From assembly GCF_964188315.1 (NCBI RefSeq), contig NC_135671.1, positions 30,256,001-30,320,000 on the forward strand: a DNA stretch of 64,000 nt, given 5' to 3'. Numbering within the stretch: the stretch's first letter is position 1; each line of letters starts with the position of its first letter. Below the pieces are notes generated by a model. The model was not told the DNA's origin. It worked only from the letters and a program-made list of their open reading frames with translations, and did no database searches. Origin of the DNA: Podarcis muralis. Lineage: Eukaryota. A program made the translations under genes and the position numbers. Shown here piece after piece: positions 3,696-4,654 of the stretch.

Positions 3696-3865
3696 AAGTG
3701 ATGGTGCTTTGAAGAGTGCTGTCGTGATCAAATGCGATGACTGTGACTTCATAGGGCTGGGAGTTGTCGTCTTCCCCGGCTGGGTGGCAGTGAAGGCAGC
3801 AGTACCTCACACAGACAGAGACGAGGCCGCAGAGGAGCAGCAGCGCAACCATCACAACCACAAGC
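3696..3865 (-). CDS. TMEM52B: TMEM52B exon 4 (TM helix, Cys cluster, [18 protein letters not shown])
   Basis: Translation matches TMEM52B; donor T|gtgag at 3695-3691; 170 nt keeps frame; acceptor dinucleotide is GG (see findings). Confidence 0.88.
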
Positions 3866-4654
3866 CCAGAAGTGGGGGGAAAGAAGGGGAGAGTCAGAAC
3901 CACTGCCGTTTATTGTTCATACTAAGTAGGAACATGGGCATAGCCTATGATTACCAGACATCCCTGTTTCCCGGGGACAGTCCCAGGATTGACAAATCTG
4001 TCCCTGGACAAAATCCGTCCCCAGAATGTCCCCGGATTTCATTTAATGTCCCCGGATTTAAATTTTAAGTGTTGTAGATTTATTAGTAGGGAATGAACGT
4101 TGCGTGATTGGTTCAACGGCACAAGACACATCATATGGGGACTTCCAGCGACGCAAAATGGCGGGCGCCGTGGCAATGAGCAGCTTCTGAAGCCAGCCAT
4201 AGCCAACTGCACTACCAGGCTGGCTCCGGGCTGCTGAGACTGCCACTGCCACCAGCACTGCCTAGGGGGAACCGAGGACACCCATCACATCAACTGGGGG
4301 AACCGCTGACACACACGCACACAACCCAAATCGAGCCAGGCGCAAGAGTGCCCGGCCAACTGCCCAGCAGCGCTCCAGGGCCAGGAAAACCCTGGAGCCG
4401 ACGCAGGGAGAAGGAGGAGAGGAGAAGGAGAAGGCAGAGAGAGAAAGAGGAAGGAGAAAAAAGAGGGGAGCCCCGACCTTGCCGCACCGCTGCCACCACT
4501 CAGGAGAAGAGGTAGGAGAGCACCGGGAGGGCAAGGACACATGGCCAGGCCCAGGCCTAACCCGAGCCTACTCCATGGTAGCTAGCGCTCCAAGGCAGCA
4601 GGCCGGGGCCCAGAGGAAGGCCACATGACAGAGGAAACCACAGAAGAGAAGATA

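Follow-up and report, generated by a model that had tools for sequence, protein, structure and literature searches.

A shared GG acceptor in intron 3 of lacertid TMEM52B and an annotated in-frame isoform without the transmembrane helix

How does Podarcis muralis TMEM52B join exon 3 to exon 4 when the intron between them ends in GG rather than AG? The gene lies on the minus strand of a 64,000-nucleotide stretch of the genome assembly (GCF_964188315.1, contig NC_135671.1, positions 30,256,001 to 30,320,000), which is referred to here as the window. To our knowledge, U2-type introns very rarely have GG acceptors that are both conserved and functional, and BANP is the textbook case. An initial annotation, made from the letters of the window, had noticed the GG and had placed several outcomes side by side: a splice-null allele, a rare non-canonical acceptor, a switch to a product lacking the transmembrane helix, or an error of consensus or sequencing.

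The exons were searched and compared one at a time. The peptide of exon 4 was subjected to a full HMMER search, followed by word searches seeded with the returned proteins P0005 and P0175; when the exon 4 peptide was the sole query of a word search, only a partial Naja protein was matched, owing to the length limit of such searches. The match of this peptide to the Pfam TMEM52 family (PF14979) scored 94 bits (E = 9.3e-27; cut-off, 26.4), which places it within the family. All exon peptides of the window were, in order, identical to isoform X1 of the RefSeq P. muralis TMEM52B (P0070, 189 aa), with single-residue gaps in the mapping only at the split codons CA/T, TG/G and T/CC (a slash marks an exon border throughout). 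The P. muralis locus retrieved from the public assembly (GCA_964188315.1, OZ076971.1) was 100% identical to positions 1 to 12801 of the window over 12,801 nt. Exon peptides and locus identity thus agree in identifying the gene, as judged from sequence, as the TMEM52B ortholog. Exon 1 encodes a signal-peptide-like segment, MGKTSRVVAISALTCLSQ, and is followed directly by a donor GT (9747-9746). Introns 1, 2 and 4 are GT-AG introns, and intron 3 is the sole exception. The features are collected in Table 1.

The surroundings of the gene contain several repeats. A long (ATT)n microsatellite (window 583-645, minus strand) lies about 200 nt past the TMEM52B stop codon, probably within the 3' UTR, and a SINE-like repeat (ggtacctcgggttaag...) is present in several copies, which are about 86 to 90% alike and lie in both orientations. 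In Lacerta agilis, the next gene upstream of TMEM52B is of the olfactory-receptor type (7tm_4; positions 1-45 of locus L003).

Table 1. Positions of TMEM52B exons, splicing signals of intron 3 and repeats in the window
Feature	Position	Strand	Detail
TMEM52B exon 1, coding part	9748..9801	-	ATG 9801-9799; X1 (P0070) residues 1-18
TMEM52B exon 2	9327..9370	-	acceptor AG 9372-9371, donor GT 9326-9325; P0070 residues 19-32 and split codon CA/T
TMEM52B exon 3	7563..7613	-	acceptor AG 7615-7614; phase 2 end TG; P0070 residues 34-49
5' splice site of intron 3, CTG/GTAAGT, U2-type	7557..7562	-	exon 3 ends ...ATC TG/; donor GT 7562-7561
Predicted branch-point heptamer TTCTGAC	3893..3899	-	A at 3894; consensus match
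Polypyrimidine tract of intron 3	3868..3892	-	24/25 bases C or T
Non-canonical acceptor GG of intron 3	3866..3867	-	homologous to AG in other squamates
TMEM52B exon 4, 170 nt, core of Pfam TMEM52 (PF14979)	3696..3865	-	Pfam match and mapping on X1
Helix-coding 60 nt (3865-3806) and G3805	3805..3865	-	60 nt absent from X2; G3805 is the exon start with the alternative acceptor
Alternative acceptor AG (gtgtgAG/G), inside codons GTG AGG	3806..3807	-	acceptor of RefSeq isoform X2
TMEM52B exon 5, coding part	838..1088	-	stop TGA 840-838, acceptor AG 1090-1089
SINE-like repeat copies	1600-1790, 2930-3175, 3367-3590, 11426-11675, ~15854-16100	both	some inside TMEM52B intron 4

On the minus strand, intron 3 begins at CTG/GTAAGT and ends in ...ggttctgactctccccttctttccccccacttctGG/G (its 3' end before exon 4 reads ...ctccccttctttccccccacttctGG). 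The junction was placed as proposed in the initial annotation: exon 3 ends in phase 2, as confirmed by the ...ATC TG/GTAAGT at 7563, exon 4 accordingly begins with G3865, and the dinucleotide that follows the long pyrimidine tract is GG (3867-3866) where AG would be expected. Of the AGs upstream, the two nearest lie at 3904-3903, which would add 37 nt, and at 3923-3922, which would add 56 nt; both are out of frame, and the initial annotation had given a frameshift or a stop for them. The statement that no AG occurs in the next 58 nt was also correct; with the first one within exon 4 (3807-3806), the exon begins at 3805, still in frame but 60 nt further on, and the product reads ...LWYIW-YCCLH... 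without the helix. Between -37 and +60 relative to the old site, no other AG occurs in any lacertid compared. The GG acceptor is, therefore, without a nearby canonical in-frame substitute, the other AGs being out of frame or 60 nt into the exon. Two other placements of the junction were considered and rejected. Sliding it by one base produces TA-GG or GG-TG borders, which are worse, and an AC at 3873-3872 would be an acceptor of the AT-AC-like kind, but it would be paired with a GT donor and would lead to a protein with C-S-G in place of W.

Orthologous TMEM52B loci were fetched and their acceptors aligned (alignments A2 and A3), giving six species with GG and five with AG. The acceptor read cttctGG/GCTTGTGG in P. 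muralis, P. raffonei, P. lilfordi, Lacerta agilis and Zootoca vivipara, that is, in all lacertids compared, and ccacttctGG/GCTTGTGG in the amphisbaenian Rhineura floridana. An AG was found at this place in Elgaria (cacttctAG/G), Naja (ttccAG/G), Pogona (ccgAG/G), Hemicordylus (tatAG/G) and Eublepharis (ttccAG/G). The Elgaria site is an exact precursor, one transition away from the lacertid cacttctGG/G. Ten of the loci extend as far as exon 3 (that of P. lilfordi is too short), and the donor of intron 3 is conserved in each of them; the TTCTGAC motif was kept in all GG species and was recognisable in Naja and Elgaria.

The homology of the GG to the AG of five squamates and its identity in six species of one clade indicated more than a chance resemblance. 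That the GG is an error of assembly or consensus, or else an allele that is private to the sequenced animal or polymorphic, had a claim to attention through the rarity of GG acceptors only. Assemblies of six species, made by different projects, all have this GG, so that this explanation can be set aside as having a negligible probability; what the initial annotation had treated as a possible error or as an allele of one genome is a trait common to the whole clade. Both Lacertidae and Rhineuridae were placed within Lacertibaenia by taxonomy look-up. The simplest history for these acceptors would be a single A-to-G change at -2 before Lacertidae and Amphisbaenia parted, which would place the change on the stem of Lacertibaenia or Laterata; it could be somewhat older, as no teiid (Salvator) was part of the comparison. 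Squamate timetrees put the lacertid-amphisbaenian split at well over 100 million years ago, and the GG is thus probably a clade-wide trait that is more than 100 million years old.

A further reading is that TMEM52B is inactive in this lineage, as a splice-null allele or a unitary pseudogene; it draws on the position of a non-canonical acceptor ahead of a key exon. The gene was examined for the marks of selection. All exons were open in the six GG species, and exon 4 was without stops or indels. Between Podarcis and Rhineura, the helix segment (the first 60 nt of exon 4) had 6 synonymous and 3 non-synonymous differences (dN/dS 0.17; identity, 52/61 nt), and the rest of exon 4 had 6 synonymous and 7 non-synonymous differences (dN/dS 0.26; identity, 96/109); dN/dS was between 0.1 and 0.4 in both parts of the exon. 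The last 10 bases of the intron were identical between these two genera and positions -11 to -45 were 74% identical, indicating that the acceptor region itself is constrained, while identity in intron 3 beyond -45 was just ~0.5-0.58. These patterns point to purifying selection on TMEM52B across Lacertidae and Rhineura. Given that the six GG species all conserve five open exons, and given a constrained acceptor and an open helix segment, the splice-null outcome of the initial annotation is very unlikely.

The helix segment is informative for a further reason, since it would belong to the intron if only the downstream AG were used. Across the six GG species, its variable sites numbered 1, 2 and 7 at codon positions 1, 2 and 3, respectively (binomial p = 0.02), the selection statistics for this segment being based on 20 codons only; for the whole of exon 4, 19 of 29 variable sites were third positions (p = 4e-4). 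The replacements in the segment were conservative (M/I, V/G, A/G and L/V). On the evidence of these substitutions, the pattern fits a translated helix and does not fit the final part of a longer intron.

The annotated proteins bear on which junctions may be used. Isoform X1 is present in RefSeq as a protein of 189 aa for P. muralis (two annotation releases) and P. raffonei and of 186 aa for L. agilis, and isoform X2 is present as a protein of 169 aa for the first two species (again in two annotation releases for P. muralis) and of 166 aa for L. agilis; full-length models are also annotated for Zootoca and Rhineura. X2 has the helix-less junction ...NWVHLWYIW/YCCLH... in all three species for which it is annotated, and the window peptide past the alternative AG maps on the P. 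muralis X2 (P0175) directly after W50. The annotation of X1 requires a GT-GG intron (7562-3866) and that of X2 a GT-AG intron (7562-3806). X2 is in frame only because the arginine codon after the helix is AGG, the joined TG/G then restoring a tryptophan; Naja has AGA at that place, and the equivalent splice would create a TGA. Being in frame, X2 would not be a target of nonsense-mediated decay, which may explain its visibility to annotation. Of the outcomes listed in the initial annotation, the rare non-canonical acceptor and the product without a helix are thus both supported, but as coexisting forms in three lacertids rather than as the alternatives that they had been taken to be.

Other TMEM52B models differed in ways of their own. 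A mammal-like 161-aa TMEM52B from a 1.4-kb Logan contig (P0179) is also helix-less (...HLWYI-CCLSRQQ...), so that transcripts of this kind may not be confined to lizards. A 179-aa protein of Salvator merianae (P0130) is without the 13 residues HCSHTNWVHLWYIW, a different alternative form that corresponds to skipping of exon 3. The P. lilfordi model (P0172, 135 aa; locus L005) begins at an internal methionine of the helix, and a partial Naja naja protein (P0001; locus L001) has the helix region in the wrong frame despite a normal AG. Three TMEM52B-like proteins of Erythrolamprus reginae (P0057, P0058 and P0182) carry the name of GABARAPL1 isoforms, suggesting read-through or merged models with a neighbouring gene.

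A rival reading is that the GG site is dead. Lacertids and amphisbaenians would then make only X2 or skipped forms, the X1 models would be artefacts of homology-driven annotation, and conservation of the 60 nt would be that of a longer intron's 3' end. Changes of A to G at -2 of an acceptor normally abolish the site, as described for SLC26A4 c.919-2A>G, which results in exon skipping (PMC8987850, in the portion of that source available). Moreover, no AG intervenes between the predicted branch point and the X2 site, which is annotated in three species. No lacertid transcript-derived protein of either isoform was present among the Logan proteins searched, and these searches provided no independent transcript with the X1 junction; the Gnomon/RefSeq support for the X1 models could in principle be protein homology. 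This explanation would not, however, account for the helix segment, in which substitutions are mostly synonymous and at third positions and a hydrophobic helix is maintained in six species, as expected of translated sequence but not of a polypyrimidine tract. Full-length models also arose independently in five annotated species. A dead GG site is, therefore, considered to be unlikely, and that transcripts are spliced at the GG is inferred from the RefSeq models together with the pattern of selection and conservation.

The type of the intron also had to be established, since GT-GG borders have been catalogued mostly among U12-type introns, with five human cases, including examples in ARAF and SLC12A7 (Sheth et al. 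2006, PMC1557818). A U12-type intron 3 would provide a ready setting for the GG because such borders are tolerated there, the ARAF intron being conserved between human and mouse (PMC1557818). The donor of intron 3 is, however, GTAAGTTTC and not RTATCCTTT, with 3 of 6 positions matching ATCCTT, and no exact match to the U12 branch site TCCTTRAY was detected in the last 60 nt of the intron (best match, 5/8). The signals that are present are U2-like: the CTG/GTAAGT donor, a tract with 24 of 25 pyrimidines, and a putative branch site, TTCTGAC at -28, that fits the U2 consensus. The distance from the predicted branch-point A (3894) is 28 nt to G3866 and 88 nt to the AG within exon 4. A U12-type intron is, hence, a highly improbable explanation.

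These observations are likely to be best described by an old, conserved GT-GG intron of U2 type, whose weak acceptor also allows use of the first downstream AG. An ancestral A-to-G change at -2 would have turned the acceptor AG into GG, which would have been retained since. The near-perfect donor, the consensus branch site and the almost pure 25-nt pyrimidine tract may permit recognition of the intron without an AG, and on these strong signals the first step of splicing would also proceed without one. In the second step, exon 3 may be joined after the old GG, yielding X1, a full-length single-pass membrane protein; otherwise, it may be joined after the AG that comes first past the branch point and lies at the end of the first 60 nt of exon 4, yielding X2 without the transmembrane helix and in frame.

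A stronger proposal is that the GG is not a defect that is tolerated but a selected switch, which by weakening the old site would have given Lacertibaenia a regulated choice between membrane-anchored and helix-less TMEM52B, and that the AGG codon and the AG-free 58 nt are maintained for this purpose. The helix-less form would, on this proposal, retain the signal peptide and so would probably be secreted or luminal. We regard such a switch as a tentative and rather doubtful extension of the reading as a conserved GT-GG intron.

Both isoforms are already public in the annotation, and the GG acceptor is a real and inherited feature. The combination of a single dated change, retention by a whole clade and an in-frame isoform that removes a helix makes this intron a clean natural test, in which both the tolerance of the spliceosome for a G at -2 and the birth of alternative splicing from a weakened site can be investigated. 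Annotation is affected as well, since pipelines that insist on AG will mis-model TMEM52B, and a soluble form of the protein is predicted for lacertids.

The GG acceptor of TMEM52B and its age were in no paper found by literature searches. Papers on this gene were concerned with human cancer biology and with the N-terminal isoforms P18 and P20 (PMC11434218), and those naming both 'TMEM52B' and 'lizard' dealt, by title and abstract, with the evolution of CD1/NKR-P1 genes and with a cell atlas of the pig. The human isoforms P18 and P20 differ at the N terminus, retain the helix and are located at the membrane or in the cytoplasm (PMC11434218). Like the lacertid X1 and X2, for which such a difference in location is predicted, they are isoforms of TMEM52B, but only X2 is without the helix.

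Among known splice sites, SLC26A4 c.919-2A>G is the same change at the same position, but it causes loss of function, whereas the TMEM52B change is fixed in a gene under selection. The ARAF and SLC12A7 introns have the same terminal dinucleotides, and that of ARAF is conserved between species; these are U12-type, in contrast to the U2-type donor and branch site in TMEM52B. A further comparison is with AG exclusion zones and with the selection of whichever AG comes first after a branch point (Gooding et al. 2006, PMC1431707). The AG-free span of TMEM52B from -37 to +60 fits this rule, with the differences that the zone enters coding sequence and that the branch point is a predicted one.

The closest parallel is BANP, whose GG 3' splice site is derived from AG, is conserved in most vertebrates and is supported by cDNA/EST and RNA-seq data (Parada et al. 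2014, PMC4176328); its alternative 3' site is used only in species bearing the GG (PMC4176328). The two genes are alike in a GT-GG intron derived from an ancestral AG, in conservation across a large clade and in the presence of an alternative 3' site. They differ in that the clade is Lacertibaenia rather than most vertebrates and in that the TMEM52B site is known from RefSeq models and a pattern of conservation. TMEM52B thus joins the GG acceptors of the BANP type in another gene and another clade and, unlike BANP, with an alternative site whose use takes out one complete transmembrane helix and keeps the reading frame.
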